Positions 7,290 to 41,396 of a stretch of 64,000 nt of DNA are shown here, one piece after another. The position numbers and the translations under genes are program-made. This stretch comes from Perna viridis (taxonomy: Eukaryota). The stretch covers positions 21,886,001 through 21,950,000 of the forward strand of contig CM074518.1 of assembly GCA_037379345.1 (NCBI GenBank). The letters are read 5' to 3'. The notes beneath the pieces were generated by a model that saw only the letters and a program-made list of their open reading frames with translations, was not told the DNA's origin and made no database searches. Every line of letters starts with the position of its first letter. Position 1 is the first letter of the stretch.

Positions 7290-7543
7290 ATGGATGAAAT
7301 GGATATTTTTTGTGAACATGAAAACACGTCAAATGACGAATTTTCTTCGTTTCAAGCAATGGAAATAATTCCCCAAGATGACAAATTGACTTACTATCAG
7401 GTCAAAAACAATGAAGGGGGCTATGTGTACAAAGTTACTGACTTAACTCGAGTTTTGAGATTTCTCTGTTTGGGAACAGAAAAAGGTACATATTATAGCA
7501 AAGAAAAAGAGCTGAAGAGAGAAAACGCAGAATGTATCGATAG
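7290..7543 (+). CDS. RO60: Orphan Ro60 first coding exon ('exon A'); probable alternative first exon, with no second exon of its own
   Basis: Encodes MDEMDIF..QVKNNEGGYVYKVTDLTRVLRFLCLGTEKGTYY..ENAECID-R, the Ro60 N-terminal motif (RFLC.G.EGGTYY). It ends AG|gtaaat in phase 2. The start could also be the ATG at 7278 or 7299. The nearest Ro60 exon 2 acceptor is 19447. Confidence 0.8.
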
Positions 7544-10510
7544 GTAAATAACACATTTAACCACAAATGATTTGTTTCTCTTATATCAGAAACACATATA
7601 ACATTTCTAGCAGTTGTACGAAAAACATTTTTGACATTTTATTTAGGATAGGGAAAGATCTTATGACACGTCTGTAACTAATTAAAAAGATCATATCAAT
7701 ACTTGAATTATTTTGGTTTATTATATGTGTTACGTTATATTTGTATTGTTCCAAATTGGTAATTGTATTTAGCCCATAAGAACATCAAAACTTAAATGTA
7801 ATGTGCAAGGCATCTTTTACCGTTTTGTAAGCTGTTTCATTTTATTGGTGACAACCACTGTTTCAAATAGTGAAAATGATGCATGGTCATGCAGTTCCAG
7901 TACGAATGTTTCTTTATCTATCAATACAATAATATCCAGGTTAAACAATCTTAACACAGCAAAACATACTTTACTATAATATTTGTTCTTTCACTTTAGA
8001 AATAATATTTATAAATTGTCTTGTGGGAAGATTCAAGCTTATTTCTCATGTTTATGTTAAAAGCTTTTAAGTTTAAAATGGCGTATTACATAGCTATGGA
8101 AGTATATTAAATAAAGTCATTTATAATTAAATCTACAAAGAAATATTTCCTTAAAAAATACATGTGACCAATATTCGGTAAAAATATACTTAAACCGTGA
8201 ATATCGACTCTCCTTACGTACGATACAAAAAATATTTTTTGTTAAATTTAGTTTCTTTGTTTCTTCTTTGTTTGCTTTATGTTGCCATTTAGCTATTCAT
8301 TTTGTATGAGTTATAGGCTTCGTGTTTGTGTATGTTTATCTGTTTTGATTTGTTTTAGGACTTTTGTATTTTGTTTTTATTTTATTCAGTTCTATTGATC
8401 TTCTGTGGGGTATCTAAACATCAAACCAACATTAAGTAGGAAAAGCAAATTCAATTATATATTAGAACCCCCCCCCCCCGAAAAGAAACATCGGGGTGGT
8501 TAAGGATTTGTCAAATATGAAATATTCTAACATTTAACCTTTGCATTTCACAAGAATTAAGACTGGATTTTCGTGTTTTGAGCGTTTTATTTCCATTTTA
8601 CATTTATTTGTGAAAAACCATAATTTCAATATGGATAGAACAATTTATTCCTTTCTATGTTTTACCGGCTTTTTAACTAATTAATGTAATGAATTCGGAA
8701 TAAAAGTCGTGGGATTTGCAATGAAGTGTTACAATATATGTTTATGATTATACTAGGTGTATACTCAATCACTGTAAATTTGTACAGCATATTATTGAAT
8801 GACATAGAGGTCTATAAGTTTTGTTTTTGTTGTTTAATTTGGTTCTTTTTATCTATGTTAAACTAAACCTCTAAAAATAAAAAAAAATATATATTTCTCT
8901 GTGACACACATTCTGTGTTTTGTTTAATAAATGAAACAGATTGGAATTTTCATTTCTTTGTCGAAAAATATTGTAAGTTCCAAAAGGTCCCGACGTTGTG
9001 TGTATTGTGAATCTATCTGGAAATGCGGATGATAGTCTTTTCATATCAGTTTTTCATGTCATTTTTAAAACGGTTTAATTGTTGTTCTTATACATAAATA
9101 TACATAGAAGTATGAAATGATTTTTTTTTTATTCTGAATTATATAATTATGAGAAATTCAGATATATTTAGTAGGTTTTTTTTTAAATTTGTGATTGTTT
9201 TCTTCCTGATAATGTTTTGTTTGCATTGCTTTGCTGTTTTTATTGTTTTCGTTTTTGTTTTTTATTTTTATTTTTTTATGCCAAGTATGGTACACGTTGT
9301 TACATGAACGATTTTAATAAATTGACTCTGGAATTGAGTGCGTGAAATACGTATATGACTAGAGGCTTATATACCCATCACTTATTCAATGCATTCAAGA
9401 TAGATACAATAAACACTTTATGAACTTGCATTGTATTTCAAATGCATAAGAGGTAAACCGAACATGTTTTCTTTCAATACAAAATATCAGAAAGAGGTGC
9501 TTTATATTTTGATTAATAATGTATGGATGGAAACACATTATACATAAGTTAAGATTAGTTACTATGTAATATTCCTTGTCAGTATCTCTTGATTTTTGTA
9601 GTTTTTGAGGGACCGGTCAATATTTATTGTGGGAACCAGTGTATTTCATATTCTTCTTTTAAAAAATCCACTTGTCTGATTTTTTTGAATTTATAAAAGA
9701 AGGTTCATGTTTCATGTCAGTTGTGCAAAACAAATGTGCGTTCTTACTAATATATTAGAAATAAGACATGATTTGAAGTATGGATGCAACAGAGCATCAT
9801 TGTTTGTAAAATTAATGAGTAAGGTTTTAAATTAAACCTTATGCAAAAAAAACCCTCATAAATTTATTTTGTTCTAGATTACTTTACAGTAGTAAGCAAT
9901 TTAACTACTATCATGACATAAATAAGCTTGAACCTGCCTTCCGAATGTCATAAAAAACTATGTGAATTTTACATGGTTTGAAAGACTAGATTGTTTTGGG
10001 TTTTTTTTTTCCTACTTCATTTTTTGAATGAGTCTTTCCCAAACAAATTAGTAATTAAGGAATGGCTGTTATATTTTTTCCGGTCTATGAAGAAATAATC
10101 TCAATCAAGTTGGAAGAGTATTTGTTTTCTTTCCTTAATAATTGAGAAGCAGATGTATGTTAATCTCCTCATAATTTCATATACTTTGAGATTTTGGTGC
10201 ACGAATAATGATTTGATCAAATCTTTTTTAACACTTTCGGTGTTGTTTATTTCGCTTGCAAATAAATAGTTGCAGAGTATTCGAATTTAAAATACATGAG
10301 CATCATAGTATTTTTTTATATTAACAAAAAAATATGTTATGTCATGTTCATGTTAAAAAATTATCCGGTTTCAATGATTCGTATATAAGCAAAAATACAC
10401 ATGCTCCGGGTTAAAGTTAAATTATTTTAGAAATAATCCTGAATGCCTTCAATCGTAATGTAAATACTTTGTCTATAATATAATACAGTATAGTTGTAAT
10501 GTATTTGAGG

Positions 10511-10765
10511 AACAGGGGAATTTGTTTTGAGTTGGGAAACCCATTTCTATATTTAAACGATAGCTTTAAAATGAACCAATTACTGAACCGTATGCAATCT
10601 GATAGATATGAACTGGTAGTTTGAGAGTTAATGATAGTAATAATGGATTATAGTGCGTGTTAAATGTTACTGACTCAACTCGAGTTTGGGAAAAGAAGGG
10701 GTTTTATTTTAAAGCAATAAGAAAGAGTTGAAGAGAGAAAATGCGGAATATATCGATAGGTGAAT
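10511..10765 (+). pseudogene. Decayed duplicate of Ro60 exon A and its upstream region ('exon B')
   Basis: 10511-10580 matches 7128-7195. 10666-10765 (gttactgactcaactcgag..tttgggaa..aaagagttgaagagagaaaatgcggaatatatcgatag|gtgaat) matches 7434-7549 with a ~16-17 nt deletion and an in-frame taa. Most of the 5' half of the exon is missing. Confidence 0.8.
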
Positions 10766-38983: not shown

Positions 38984-39928
38984 CTTCTCAGAAAAGGGTG
39001 GGAGGCTGTGATTTTATTAAAAAAATAATCGATTTTTTTCAGCAGTAATCGGGAGTTAAAAGAATTTATTTCAAAATCTACATTGTAATGTAATGGAGGG
39101 AATATTGATTCAAATTATTGTTTTTGTTCTTGGATGAGTAAACTTTTTTTTTTGCTCAAATTTGGAAGAACTTTTTTTAATCCCACCTCCAGTATGAAAT
39201 TGGTTGATTCCTAAATTTGCTCAATTCAAATGGTATAGCCTACCCAGTGGATATATAAAACTTTAAAAAAATCTTTTTGTGCATATATTTTACCCCATAA
39301 ATTAAGAAAAGCATAACTAACTCGTGAATTGAGTATAGCCATGTGATGTTGTACGTGCCAAAATGGGGAAAATTTGTTAAAGTACTTGTATGGAGTTAAA
39401 TAAGAGATAGGGAATCATGAATGTGATGGATGAGGATAGTGAAGAAGAATTTGTGAAGGGTTGGAATTTTGAATGGAGATTCCGTCACTCCGAGAGTGTG
39501 GGTAAATTGTTTTAAAAGAATATTGATCTATTTCATTCAATTTTATATAATTGTAACAATTAACTAATTAAAAAACAACTACACAGTGTAGTGTTTATAT
39601 TAAAAAATATATAAATATAGAATTAAAGTTTACAATAGTTATAATAATTTAATTGCGGAAAATAAAATGGGGATTCATTGGGAATGGGGGACGATGCATT
39701 GTGCGAATGGGTAGCCCTTTCAAATATGAATCGATTTACAAAAGTATCGGTTCCTGTGATGCTGTGCAAATTATTATATTTTTCTGGTTTTATCAAATTC
39801 CAAATAATAAGAAAATGCACGTAGAAAAAAAAAGCTTTAATTGAAACAATTTTGAGCAAAGTGTCAGGGAAATGTTTTCTATACACCAGTCAAAATGACT
39901 AGCCTTACTTACTGCGTTTGCATTTCAG

Positions 39929-41396
39929 GTTAATCATGGCTAATAAAGGAGAAGATGTTGTGAGAATTATAAAGGATGTAAGTGAGAATGGCAGATCATG
40001 TAAGCAATCCACAACTATCTACTCCTTGGCTGTCTGTGCACGATCTAATGATTTAAAGACAAAAAATGCCGCCTACCGCGCTCTTGTCTGTGTGTGTCGA
40101 ATACCAACACATCTCTTCGAGTTTGTCAAGTATTGCGAAAATGAGAGTGCAGGAACGGGATGGGGTCGGGCTCACAGAGTTGCAATCGGCAAATGGTACA
40201 ACAAAACACAATACAAAAAAGACCCAGTAAAGCTGGCTCTTCACGTGACTAAATATCAAAGCCGTCATTCATGGAGCCATAGAGATGTCCTTAGATTGGC
40301 ACACATCAGACCGGAAACACCAGCCATTAGTCGCGTTATAAGATATATTGTCAAAGGTTTAAGTGAAGCGAAATCTGCACCAATGCCTATGGACGATAAC
40401 ACCTTTGGGGAAGATCAAGTTAAGAAGGTGCTTGATTTTTTAGAAGCAGTCGAAATCGGAAAAAAATGTAAGAGAGCAGAAGTGGAAAAAATGAAGACAT
40501 TGATTTCAACATATAATCTGGCAAGAGAACATGTCCCAACAAGCATGTTGGATTCTATCGAAATCTGGGACGTTTTGTTTCGTCAAATGCCTATGACTGC
40601 TATGATCAGAAACCTGGGGAAAATGTCACGTCTTGGAATGTTTAGTTCCGAGTCCTATTATGAAAATTTAGTTGTTACCAAACTAACCGAACCGAATATT
40701 TTGAAATGTGCAAAAATTCATCCTTTTACCATATTAGTTGCTTGGTACCAGTACCAAGCTGGAAAAGGCGATAAAGGCAAACTCACGTGGCCAGTGAATA
40801 ACAAAATAGTGAAGGCTCTCGAAGACGGCTTTTATCAAGCTTTCCGTTATGTAGAACCAACAGGTAAACGTTATTTGCTGGCAGTTGACGTTAGTGGTTC
40901 CATGACTGCCCCAGTAGTTGGGTCAAGTACTATTACATGTAGAGACGCCGCAGCAGCCATGATGCTCCTAACTTTGAAAGCTGAACAAGGAAAATGTGAC
41001 GTCATGGCTTTTTCTGAAACCTTTACGAAATTAGACGTAACTGAAAACGATGACATGAAAACAGCAATCGATAAATGTTCTCGTCTTCCTTTTAGTCGCA
41101 CTGACTGTTCTCTTCCGATGAAATATGCTTGTGAAATGAAGAAAAATTACGATGTGTTTGTTGTCTTCACAGATTCAGAAACTTTCTTCGGAAATATTCA
41201 TCCAGCACGAGCTCTAGTAGAGTACCGGAAGTACTCTGGAATAGAAGATGCGCGATTAATCGTGTGCGGAATGGCTACGAATGGATTCAGTATTGCCGAT
41301 CCATCCGATAGATATATGCTTGATGTGGTTGGGTTTGACACTGAGGCCCCAAGAGCAATGACAACATTCATCAATGGGGAATTTGACCGAATTTGA
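39929..41396 (+). CDS. RO60: Ro60 paralog 4, exon 2 (TROVE + vWA, MIDAS intact); spliced protein 559 aa
   Basis: Acceptor tttcag|G TTA ATC ATG. Motifs: TKYQSRHSWSHRDVLRLAHIRP, REHVPT, MPMTAMIRNLGKM, LLAVDVSGSM, TDCSLPM, FTDSET, SIADPSD..MLDVVGFD. Confidence 0.95.

Follow-up and report, generated by a model that had tools for sequence, protein, structure and literature searches.

A conserved tandem array of four Ro60 genes, two without the metal-ion-dependent adhesion site, in the mytilid Perna viridis

The 64,000-nucleotide stretch of Perna viridis DNA analysed here (contig CM074518.1, positions 21,886,001 to 21,950,000; hereafter the window) contains four intact Ro60 genes on the + strand (A-B-C-D), each composed of two exons (17117-41396), and additional first-exon sequences upstream of the proximal first exon of gene A. 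The MIDAS of the vWA domain (metal-ion-dependent adhesion site) distinguishes the canonical from the divergent members:

7290..7543, + strand, distal alternative first coding exon of gene A (exon 1a), 85 codons including the split R; intact ATG ORF, donor AG/GTAA
10477..10784, + strand, pseudo-exon 1b, exon 1a duplicated together with its 5' flank and since decayed, recognised by DNA identity and in-frame stops
17117..17364, + strand, proximal first coding exon of gene A (exon 1c); ATG ORF, donor AG/GTAC
19447..20875, + strand, exon 2 of gene A, canonical, MIDAS DVSGS; 558 aa with exon 1c
22234..22370, + strand, coding part of exon 1 of gene B, 46 codons including the split R; ORF, donor CG/GTAA
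26284..27751, + strand, exon 2 of gene B, divergent, MIDAS lost (DNGTN); 534 aa, 3' UTR to ~28470
29488..29621, + strand, coding part of exon 1 of gene C; transcript start at or before 29183-29240
31339..32818, + strand, exon 2 of gene C, divergent, MIDAS degenerate (DGSEA); 537 aa
37771..37982, + strand, exon 1 of gene D; ATG ORF, donor AG/GTAT
39929..41396, + strand, exon 2 of gene D, canonical, MIDAS DVSGS; 559 aa

The second exons correspond to long + strand ORFs (19454-20875, 26285-27751, 31286-32818 and 39918-41396), each of which matches the Pfam families TROVE and vWA_Ro60. The exon-1 ORF of each gene is short and terminates in a split R codon at an AG/GTA or CG/GTA donor; the phase-2 intron ends in a CAG/ or TAG/ acceptor, before 'LI'. 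TROVE (PF05731) scores 111-135 bits in all four genes against a curated cut-off of 23 (E-values of 4.6e-38, 2.5e-32, 9.6e-32 and 6.1e-39 for exon 2 of A, B, C and D), and vWA_Ro60 (PF25045), covered over its full profile, scores 222.7 bits in A, 210.2 in D, 94.1 in B and 74.0 in C against a cut-off of 27.7 (3.4e-66, 2.3e-62, 1.2e-26 and 1.7e-20, respectively); homology and structure searches were performed with single exons as queries. The original prediction of four uninterrupted same-strand Ro60 genes of 558, 534, 537 and 559 aa agrees in all its figures with the ORFs, Pfam matches and splice sites, and the order canonical-divergent-divergent-canonical stands as well, A and D having a full MIDAS and B and C none. 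The first exons of B and C are also shorter (45-46 codons, versus 71-83). An assembly artefact or duplicate was ruled out because the exon-2 identities between paralogs are only 36-61%, as had been argued from their divergence.

The orthologue of exon 1a in Mytilus californianus is the distal exon 1 (locus L003:10001-10246), and the exon 1a signature LGTEKG..YY.KEKEL is common to RefSeq isoform X2 of four Mytilus species, in which isoforms X1 and X2 have one exon 2 in common; exon 1c shares 69% identity with its counterpart in M. californianus, the proximal exon 1 of isoform X1. By comparison with these isoforms, exon 1a is predicted to be a conserved alternative first exon of gene A. Pseudo-exon 1b has 79-92% DNA identity to its source (10477-10580 and 10662-10784 versus 7094-7196 and 7431-7568), with ~150 nt lost internally, in-frame stops, and a coding remnant at 10683-10760. 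Two extra first exons, one intact and one decayed, had been noted from the sequence, and both are indeed present, but their orphan status is not upheld: the intact exon is gene A's alternative first exon, as in the X2 isoforms that RefSeq lists for four Mytilus species, and the decayed one is its dead copy. It is improbable that the exon at 7290-7543 is instead a relic of a lost fifth paralog, unspliced to gene A in P. viridis. The contigs examined give no transcript evidence for exon 1a, those with its ORF (Logan contigs, P0226) being collinear with the genome, and the decay of its neighbouring duplicate indicates that such exons can die; however, its ATG, frame and AG/GTAA donor are all intact in spite of saturated divergence, its position upstream of the proximal exon 1 is orthologous (9.8 kb away here, 11.6 kb in M. 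californianus), RefSeq models join its orthologue to the same exon 2 in four Mytilus species, and no exon-2-like remnant is present between 7547 and 17117. As part of gene A (7290-20875), exon 1a would provide the first of two usable, mutually exclusive first coding exons, accompanied by one dead copy.

Genes B and C are transcribed and correctly spliced. The gene C joint 29621^31339 (GT..AG, 1717 nt skipped) occurs in contigs of all four runs, from four studies, and the last 30 nt of gene B exon 1, a 30-mer unique in the window (22340-22369), are fused directly to exon 2 in contigs of three of the four (runs X1, X2 and X4), with region 26283-28471 of gene B covered by contigs in four runs. 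The RNA nature of these runs rests on the exact GT..AG joints, the run labels being a guess. For A and D, the only contigs found, Logan contigs with the exon-2 ORFs (P0011 and P0126), follow the genomic sequence straight through, including the introns.

The array is conserved in Mytilus. In M. californianus the genes also run A-B-C-D on one strand (559-527-521-553 aa; 99.76-99.81 Mb of JAKFGE010000006.1), and the order A-B-C of M. coruscus matches for the first three genes. Amino-acid identity between the window and Mytilus is 81% for A (exon 2 versus M. californianus XP_052066124), 75% for D (74-75% for exon 2 and 71% for exon 1 versus the M. californianus 553-aa gene), 56% for C and 48% for B. 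The array is a subset of a seven-gene Ro60 family, the P. viridis genome having three further Ro60-type loci on the same chromosome; for the dispersed paralog at C8:40.93 Mb, exon 1 was not found in ~10 kb upstream. Phylogenetic trees place all seven lineages in 1:1 pairs with Mytilus genes within a mytilid-only clade, gene C being sister to the M. californianus 521-aa gene (98 in the trees) and gene B having the longest branch. The unionid and oyster clades are separate: three Potamilus and two Sinanodonta proteins form a unionid-only clade, and each of these two genera has two copies on one contig with near-consecutive locus tags. The conserved gene order and 1:1 orthology with Mytilus support the earlier contention that the expansion is old. 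A retrocopy origin was rejected because the intron position is shared with genes of Ostrea and Tegillarca, which have the same two-exon structure and junction (one gene per fetched locus). Comparison of 10-kb flanks with M. californianus by tblastx gave one weak repeat-like match on the left and none on the right, and the PTP-like gene originally placed on the left was not confirmed, positions 1-7000 being without a long ORF. Contig C3 has another TROVE locus, with several exons, that may be the TEP1-like gene.

A, D, the L006 type and every outgroup have an intact MIDAS (DxSxS..T..D), and DxSxS is present in 186 of 208 retrieved homologues. The four divergent lineages (B, C and two dispersed ones) have all lost the MIDAS and form one clade (97 in the trees): A and D keep DVSGS and the later T and D, whereas in B (DNGTN) and C (DGSEA) the T and late D positions are changed too. 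One oyster copy likewise lacks the MIDAS. Among columns that are invariant, the divergent copies retain 76-91% in the ring, versus only 41-63% in the vWA domain. All seven lineages, A-D included, keep equivalents of K170, R174 and H187 (human numbering), which belong to the RNA-contact helix of human Ro60, and the CRIPTHLF and IRNLGK motifs. H187S is an RNA-binding mutant, as cited in PMC11277228, and the role of the MIDAS in Ro60 is unclear (PMC12135203). An AlphaFold model of gene B exon 2, made without exon 1 (pLDDT 91.1, pTM 0.88), predicts a closed HEAT-repeat ring capped by the vWA domain and superimposes on 9NEP, 9NFA and 1YVP with TM 0.90-0.92 and rmsd ~2.1-2.2 Å; on sequence grounds, A, C and D would have the same ring and vWA fold. 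The MIDAS-less Ro60 clade and its conservation appear to be undescribed before.

Because synonymous sites are saturated between P. viridis and Mytilus (pS 0.75-0.84), selection was measured instead on the pair M. californianus and M. coruscus, for which dN/dS is 0.095 in A, 0.32 in B and 0.37 in C (partial), with P(dN=dS) < 1e-3 in every domain of genes A and B tested. Selective retention had been proposed from the sequence, with dN/dS near 1 named as contrary evidence; the Mytilus values are well below 1, and B and C are spliced in RNA, so that this proposal holds. The raised dN/dS of B and C is equally compatible with relaxed constraint and with new function. That B and C are slowly decaying duplicates, transcribed without a function of their own, is nevertheless strongly disfavoured. 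Loss of the MIDAS, change at half of the invariant vWA positions, and shortening of the N-terminal exon to 45-46 codons would agree with decay, but the frames of both genes are open in both species after saturating synonymous divergence, conserved splice sites are in use, the ring retains 76-88% of its invariant residues, the fold predicted for B is confident, and dN/dS of gene B is significantly below 1 in both domains (P 2e-7 and 5e-4).

B and C may alternatively have neofunctionalised into fast-evolving sensors or decoys for RNA in mussel innate immunity, directed for example against viral or retroelement RNA and shaped by diversifying selection instead of a plain division of labour. They evolve three to four times faster than A, B having the longest tree branch; duplications recur by lineage, as in the unionid-only clade, and an oyster copy is also without the MIDAS; and TROVE is listed with immune families among bivalve-enriched families (PMC8382680). 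Gene-wide and domain-wide dN/dS of 0.32-0.37, with replacement changes not in excess, and 1:1 orthology with fixed copy number across distant mytilids, unlike the birth-and-death typical of immune receptors, make this reading unlikely.

The preferred explanation, that this mytilid carries four functional Ro60 genes in a conserved tandem array, is probably correct; its anatomy and history are proposed with high confidence, and the mechanism, in which RNA binding is kept and roles are divided, only tentatively, at somewhat short of an even chance. An ancestral two-exon Ro60 gene was most probably duplicated at the DNA level before the divergence of P. viridis and Mytilus, giving A and D as canonical Ro60s and B and C as members of a clade without the MIDAS. 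B and C, which are functional genes, have retained the HEAT-repeat ring, the RNA-contact helix and the overall fold. They may, like Ro60, still bind small RNAs that are structured or misfolded; lacking the MIDAS-dependent contact, the paralogs would share out the RNA-binding and partner-binding roles of Ro60 (subfunctionalisation). The array could be an RNA-surveillance or RNA-sensing module, as first suggested. It is a speculative and rather doubtful extension that the MIDAS-less clade (B, C and the two dispersed lineages) is a distinct functional class of proteins that bind RNA with the ring only and serve as dedicated sensors, sponges or decoys for RNAs of viral or retroelement origin or damaged by stress, in mussels. 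No Y RNA is known in molluscs. An Rfam scan of the whole window (E<=1) found no Y RNA or other known RNA family, and a genome-wide search for Y_RNA (RF00019) was blank, with only 51 of ~116,000 candidates scored.

On this speculative extension, the MIDAS-less and MIDAS-bearing paralogs would together constitute a natural separation-of-function set that reveals what the Ro60 MIDAS does. Three of the seven mussel lineages have the MIDAS and four do not, and the four array copies (two of each) are intact; therefore, the RNA-binding ring and the metal site have already been separated by nature. The role of the MIDAS could emerge from setting the RNA and protein partners of A or D against those of B or C, a comparison that could also tell whether Y-like RNAs exist in invertebrates. 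A second, conserved layer of diversity comes from the alternative first exons.

Among known systems, Rsr of Deinococcus radiodurans works with Y RNA and PNPase, and the bacterial Y RNA gene is adjacent to rsr, whereas this window has no RNA family match; the fold is the same (2NVO, TM 0.70; E 2e-42). TEP1, which is telomerase- and vault-associated, is a very long protein that shares the TROVE domain and continues with a NACHT NTPase and WD40 repeats; TEP1 identity was rejected for the window ORFs, which end right after vWA_Ro60, with no NACHT, WD40 or other Pfam family. The organisms in which Ro60 has been investigated have one gene for it, which in vertebrates is multi-exon, in contrast to the single intron of the window genes. 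Vertebrate Ro60 (RO60/TROVE2; Xenopus 1YVP/1YVR/2I91, human 9NEN/9NEP) has the same TROVE ring and C-terminal vWA domain, and human Ro60 aligns with gene B over residues 64-533 (phmmer, E 6e-84). The RNA-contact residues of the vertebrate protein are kept in all four window genes and its full MIDAS in A and D, but B and C lack both the MIDAS and the conserved N-terminal Q.xN..GG segment, and the single vertebrate gene compares with seven per genome in P. viridis.

The 'RNA-binding protein RO60-like' genes of Mytilus in RefSeq are direct orthologues with the same order, strand and alternative first exons, their names being machine-annotated only; no description of the array, the MIDAS-less clade or the isoforms was found in the literature searched. 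Two 2021 papers report bivalve-enriched TROVE-domain orthogroups, OG498 (PMC8382680) and OG0000280 (PMC8059625), with 9.2 genes per bivalve versus 1.9 in other molluscs, 97 of 123 proteins from Bivalvia, and a bivalve ancestor without duplication. With this enrichment published and the Mytilus genes already annotated, the copy-number expansion itself is not new: the original background of a single-copy Ro60 does not extend to bivalves, which are multi-copy, and, as the original refuting condition had set out, the novelty drawn from copy number falls away. These orthogroups represent the same family, although they are table entries without analysis of gene structure, synteny, motifs or selection and may also take in TEP1-like TROVE proteins. 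The lineage-specific clades in the present trees agree with them, and the seven Ro60-type loci of the P. viridis genome fit a lineage-specific bivalve TROVE expansion, with several genes per genome that were duplicated after the bivalve ancestor.

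All four long open reading frames (ORFs) of the tandem array, assigned to genes A to D in array order, match Pfam TROVE (E 4.6e-38 to 9.6e-32) and PF25045, the Ro60-specific vWA family (E 3.4e-66 to 1.7e-20), with no other match of note in a Pfam search of the four; the window is AT-rich (GC ~0.28-0.42). The TROVE matches begin at profile positions 21-49, indicating that an N-terminal exon is missing from each long ORF, and for each gene such an exon is supplied by short upstream ORFs. Each exon-1 ORF breaks off within an arginine codon, with GTA next (AG^GTA in four, CG^GTA in gene B, ^ marking the junction), the acceptor preceding each long ORF is CAG^ or TAG^, and the frame resumes with L-I. 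The lengths of the original prediction (558, 534, 537 and 559 aa) are reproduced exactly when the exons are joined on paper, whereas protein searches, the fold model and trees were run on single exons.

Ro60 features of the window
7290 (ATG)-7543, + strand: exon 1a, the fifth intact exon-1 ORF, donor AG^GTAA
10683-10760, + strand: coding remnant of a sixth exon-1 copy, carrying a stop
17117-17364 and 19447-20872, + strand: gene A, 558 aa, exons joined on paper
19454-20875, + strand: long ORF of gene A, TROVE and vWA_Ro60
22234-22370 and 26284-27748, + strand: gene B, 534 aa, exons joined on paper
26285-27751, + strand: long ORF of gene B, TROVE and vWA_Ro60
29488-29621 and 31339-32815, + strand: gene C, 537 aa, exons joined on paper
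31286-32818, + strand: long ORF of gene C, TROVE and vWA_Ro60
37771-37982 and 39929-41393, + strand: gene D, 559 aa, exons joined on paper
39918-41396, + strand: long ORF of gene D, TROVE and vWA_Ro60

Across the whole assembly (723 Mb, 46 contigs), a TROVE search recovers the array's four genes plus three further Ro60-type loci, which lie at 15.67, 28.18 and 40.93 Mb of the window's own contig, C8. The 28.18-Mb gene is canonical, with the MIDAS (metal-ion-dependent adhesion site) of its vWA domain present; the other two are MIDAS-less and have C-terminal extensions (open frames of 544 and 559 aa). The same kind of exon 1 lies upstream of the 15.67-Mb (fetched loci L011/L024) and 28.18-Mb (L006/L025) loci, and none was found within ~10 kb upstream of the 40.93-Mb locus (L008). 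Elsewhere, on contig C3 (6683380-6690417, - strand; L009, L010, L015), a TROVE domain is spread over several short exons of what may be a TEP1-like gene rather than a Ro60.

Exon 2 of gene A shares 81% identity with a RO60-like protein of Mytilus californianus; the best match of gene B exon 2, also from Mytilus, reaches only 48% identity. M. californianus carries TROVE plus vWA_Ro60 genes of 559, 527, 521 and 553 aa, in that order and on one strand (JAKFGE010000006.1, 99.76-99.81 Mb), and M. coruscus has the first three array genes in the same order. Exon-2 proteins were placed in trees together with sequences from Mytilus, other bivalves, gastropods and a chiton, plus three outgroups; the trees were quick searches with SH-aLRT support only and put B and C on long branches. 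All mytilid Ro60 sequences fall in a single clade (SH-aLRT 99 and 92), within which seven lineages each pair a gene of Perna viridis with Mytilus genes.

Mytilid Ro60 lineages in the exon-2 trees (SH-aLRT where noted)
A: Mytilus 559-aa gene
D: Mytilus 551/553-aa genes
28.18-Mb gene: Mytilus 561-aa gene
C: Mytilus 521-aa gene (98)
40.93-Mb gene: Mytilus 592-aa gene (99)
15.67-Mb gene: Mytilus 523-594-aa group (98)
B: grouped with the Mytilus 527-aa group, inside a clade (100) also containing C

With pS of 0.75-0.84, synonymous sites between P. viridis and M. californianus have reached saturation; the seven lineages are therefore old, and the original prediction of an old expansion is borne out by these values together with the conserved order and pairing. 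The Ro60 genes of Ostrea edulis and Tegillarca granosa also have two exons with the same junction (CIDR^LI), which argues that the ancestor was a two-exon gene copied as DNA; the shared junction rules out a retrocopy origin of the array genes. Unionid Ro60 sequences form a unionid-only clade, and two Potamilus (P0133/P0134) and two Sinanodonta (P0015/P0140) proteins are each encoded on one contig with near-consecutive locus tags, suggesting independent tandem duplication in unionids and thus that Ro60 duplication recurs in bivalves.

The flanks of the array were also considered. A broken non-LTR-type retroelement occupies 44646-46887 (- strand), its RVT_1 (1.3e-23) and RNase H (2.1e-12) ORFs being separate and split across several frames. 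The C2H2 gene proposed as the right-hand neighbour is present (60437-61708, - strand, a 423-aa ORF with C-terminal zinc fingers); a comparison with 10 kb on the downstream side of the M. californianus array found no match to it.

The original prediction had counted two extra first exons upstream of gene A, one intact (7290-7543) and one decayed; both are present, but probably neither is an orphan. The ATG of a distal exon 1 (fetched locus L003:10001-10246) is the exact start of the M. californianus A-type gene's coding range; this exon resembles the P. viridis exon at 7290, and a proximal exon 1 follows 11.6 kb downstream, versus a spacing of 9.8 kb in P. viridis. The 90% cluster of the M. californianus A-type protein includes two RefSeq isoforms, X1 with the proximal exon (559 aa) and X2 with the distal exon (556-557 aa), a pair present for M. 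californianus, M. edulis, M. trossulus and M. galloprovincialis in which both isoforms run into the same exon 2; M. galloprovincialis has an extra isoform, X3, with a third first exon. Since exon 1a resembles the Mytilus distal exon, carrying its signature LGTEKG..YY.KEKEL, it is most readily interpreted as an alternative first coding exon of gene A, conserved and mutually exclusive with the proximal one; a contig look-up found only genome-collinear contigs carrying its ORF. The sixth copy matches the region of exon 1a in two blocks (10477-10580 and 10662-10784 versus 7094-7196 and 7431-7568, 79-92% DNA identity) with ~150 nt lost between them, which together with the stop indicates a dead duplicate of exon 1a and its 5' flank, a putative failed third alternative first exon.

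RNA contigs were compared over 26200-32199 (B exon 2, C exon 1, the C intron and part of C exon 2) in four runs from four studies, labelled RNA only by guess, with contig totals of 65-99 Mb versus 658-934 Mb for the same organism's largest three runs of undetermined kind. In every run a contig leaves out 29622-31338 between GT..AG ends, coinciding base for base with the predicted C intron. Three of the four also have a B exon 2 contig that starts at the predicted acceptor and is preceded by 204-226 extra letters; the final 30 of these match the end of B exon 1 (22340-22369), a unique sequence. The B transcript extends to ~28470. Such exact intron removal shows that the contigs derive from RNA and that B and C are both transcribed and correctly spliced; the contigs show the presence of transcript and cannot rank expression levels. 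Within the C intron, summed contig depth at 29770-30117 is very high in each of the four runs, with numerous loose ends and odd joints; the stretch looks like a multi-copy transcribed repeat.

Selection was measured on the unsaturated pair M. californianus/M. coruscus (dS 0.22-0.27), which gives dN/dS of 0.095 for A, 0.32 for B and 0.37 for C (the latter over the 273 codons open in M. coruscus). By domain, dN/dS is 0.14 in the ring (the HEAT-repeat TROVE part) and 0.04 in the vWA of A, and 0.32 in both the ring and the vWA of B, with P(dN=dS) <= 5e-4 in all four tests. Purifying selection acts on both B and C, with its strongest relaxation in the vWA domain, and the selective retention originally proposed is upheld, values near 1 not being seen on the extra copies. 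The M. coruscus C-type gene (fetched locus L016:13350-20911) is modelled at 384 aa, with only 273 codons of exon 2 open and the copy interrupted in the assembly; either an assembly problem or damage to this copy could be the cause.

The equivalents of human Ro60 K170, R174 and H187 are kept in all seven lineages in alignment to the human protein, as are the motifs CRIPTHLF and IRNLGK; the three residues are RNA-contact positions of human Ro60. Divergent copies retain 76-91% of the 67 ring columns invariant among 12 canonical sequences versus 41-63% of the 46 such vWA columns, and Pfam scores fall from ~133 to ~112 bits for TROVE and from ~216 to 74-94 bits for vWA. The first exons of B and C are shorter (45-46 codons) and are without the N-terminal Q.xN..GG..Y.V segment. 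In an alignment of the seven lineages and outgroups, the complete MIDAS signature DxSxS...T...D (PMC11277228) occurs, as DVSGS, T and D, in the 28.18-Mb lineage, in A and D and in all outgroups, whereas the four divergent lineages have lost it. The motif reads DNGTN in B (DGSEE in Mytilus), DGSEA/T in C and SVGE[D/N] in the 15.67-Mb and 40.93-Mb genes; indels are present at the T position, and the late D is gone from B and C. Because these four lineages form one clade (SH-aLRT 97), a single early loss is the simplest reading. DxSxS is kept in 186 of the 208 retrieved homologues, the exceptions being mostly the MIDAS-less mytilid clade plus a Crassostrea gigas protein (P0054), on a long branch within the oyster clade, and a few unnamed sequences. 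The homologues P0017-P0020, P0025 and P0176 likewise have altered MIDAS motifs, so that MIDAS loss may be recurrent in bivalve Ro60 duplicates. An AlphaFold model of B exon 2 from a 55-sequence alignment (mean pLDDT 91.1, pTM 0.88) superimposes on human and Xenopus Ro60 with query-normalised TM of 0.90-0.92 and rmsd of 2.1-2.2 A, predicting that the Ro60 fold is retained in B despite the loss. By domains, modelled fold and RNA-contact residues, A to D are Ro60 family members, B and C being a variant within the family as they lack the MIDAS.

In the established model, the Ro60 ring, capped by a vWA domain, carries Y RNA on the outside and takes up the single-stranded 3' ends of misfolded RNAs in the hole (PMC12135203), and A and D would accordingly be expected to act as ordinary Ro60s. 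No Rfam family, Y RNA included, was found within the 64-kb window, and a genome-wide search with the Y_RNA model (RF00019) gave no hit among the 51 of about 116,000 candidates scored. B and C would still bind RNA, without the metal-dependent vWA contact, and the most economical reading is that the paralogs divide the work between them, whether by RNA partner, protein partner, tissue or compartment. The main rival is a faster-evolving immune or decoy role for B and C, which show the higher dN/dS. Simple decay of B and C, to which the lost MIDAS and relaxed vWA might point, is strongly disfavoured: all four genes are intact and conserved, and B and C, the doubtful pair, are expressed as spliced RNA. 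As the role of the MIDAS in Ro60 is called unclear (PMC12135203), the functional consequence of its loss is not derivable from sequence.

A literature search turned up no account of the array, of the seven conserved lineages, of the MIDAS-less clade or of the alternative first exons; the Mytilus orthologues and isoforms are all named in RefSeq. The expansion in copy number was already known: in Table 2 of Regan et al. 2021 (PMC8382680), a TROVE-domain orthogroup has 9.2 genes per bivalve versus 1.9 in other molluscs, with no duplication in the bivalve ancestor, and in the MolluscDB paper (PMC8059625, Table 3) 97 of the 123 proteins of the TROVE orthogroup are bivalve, both being table entries without further discussion.
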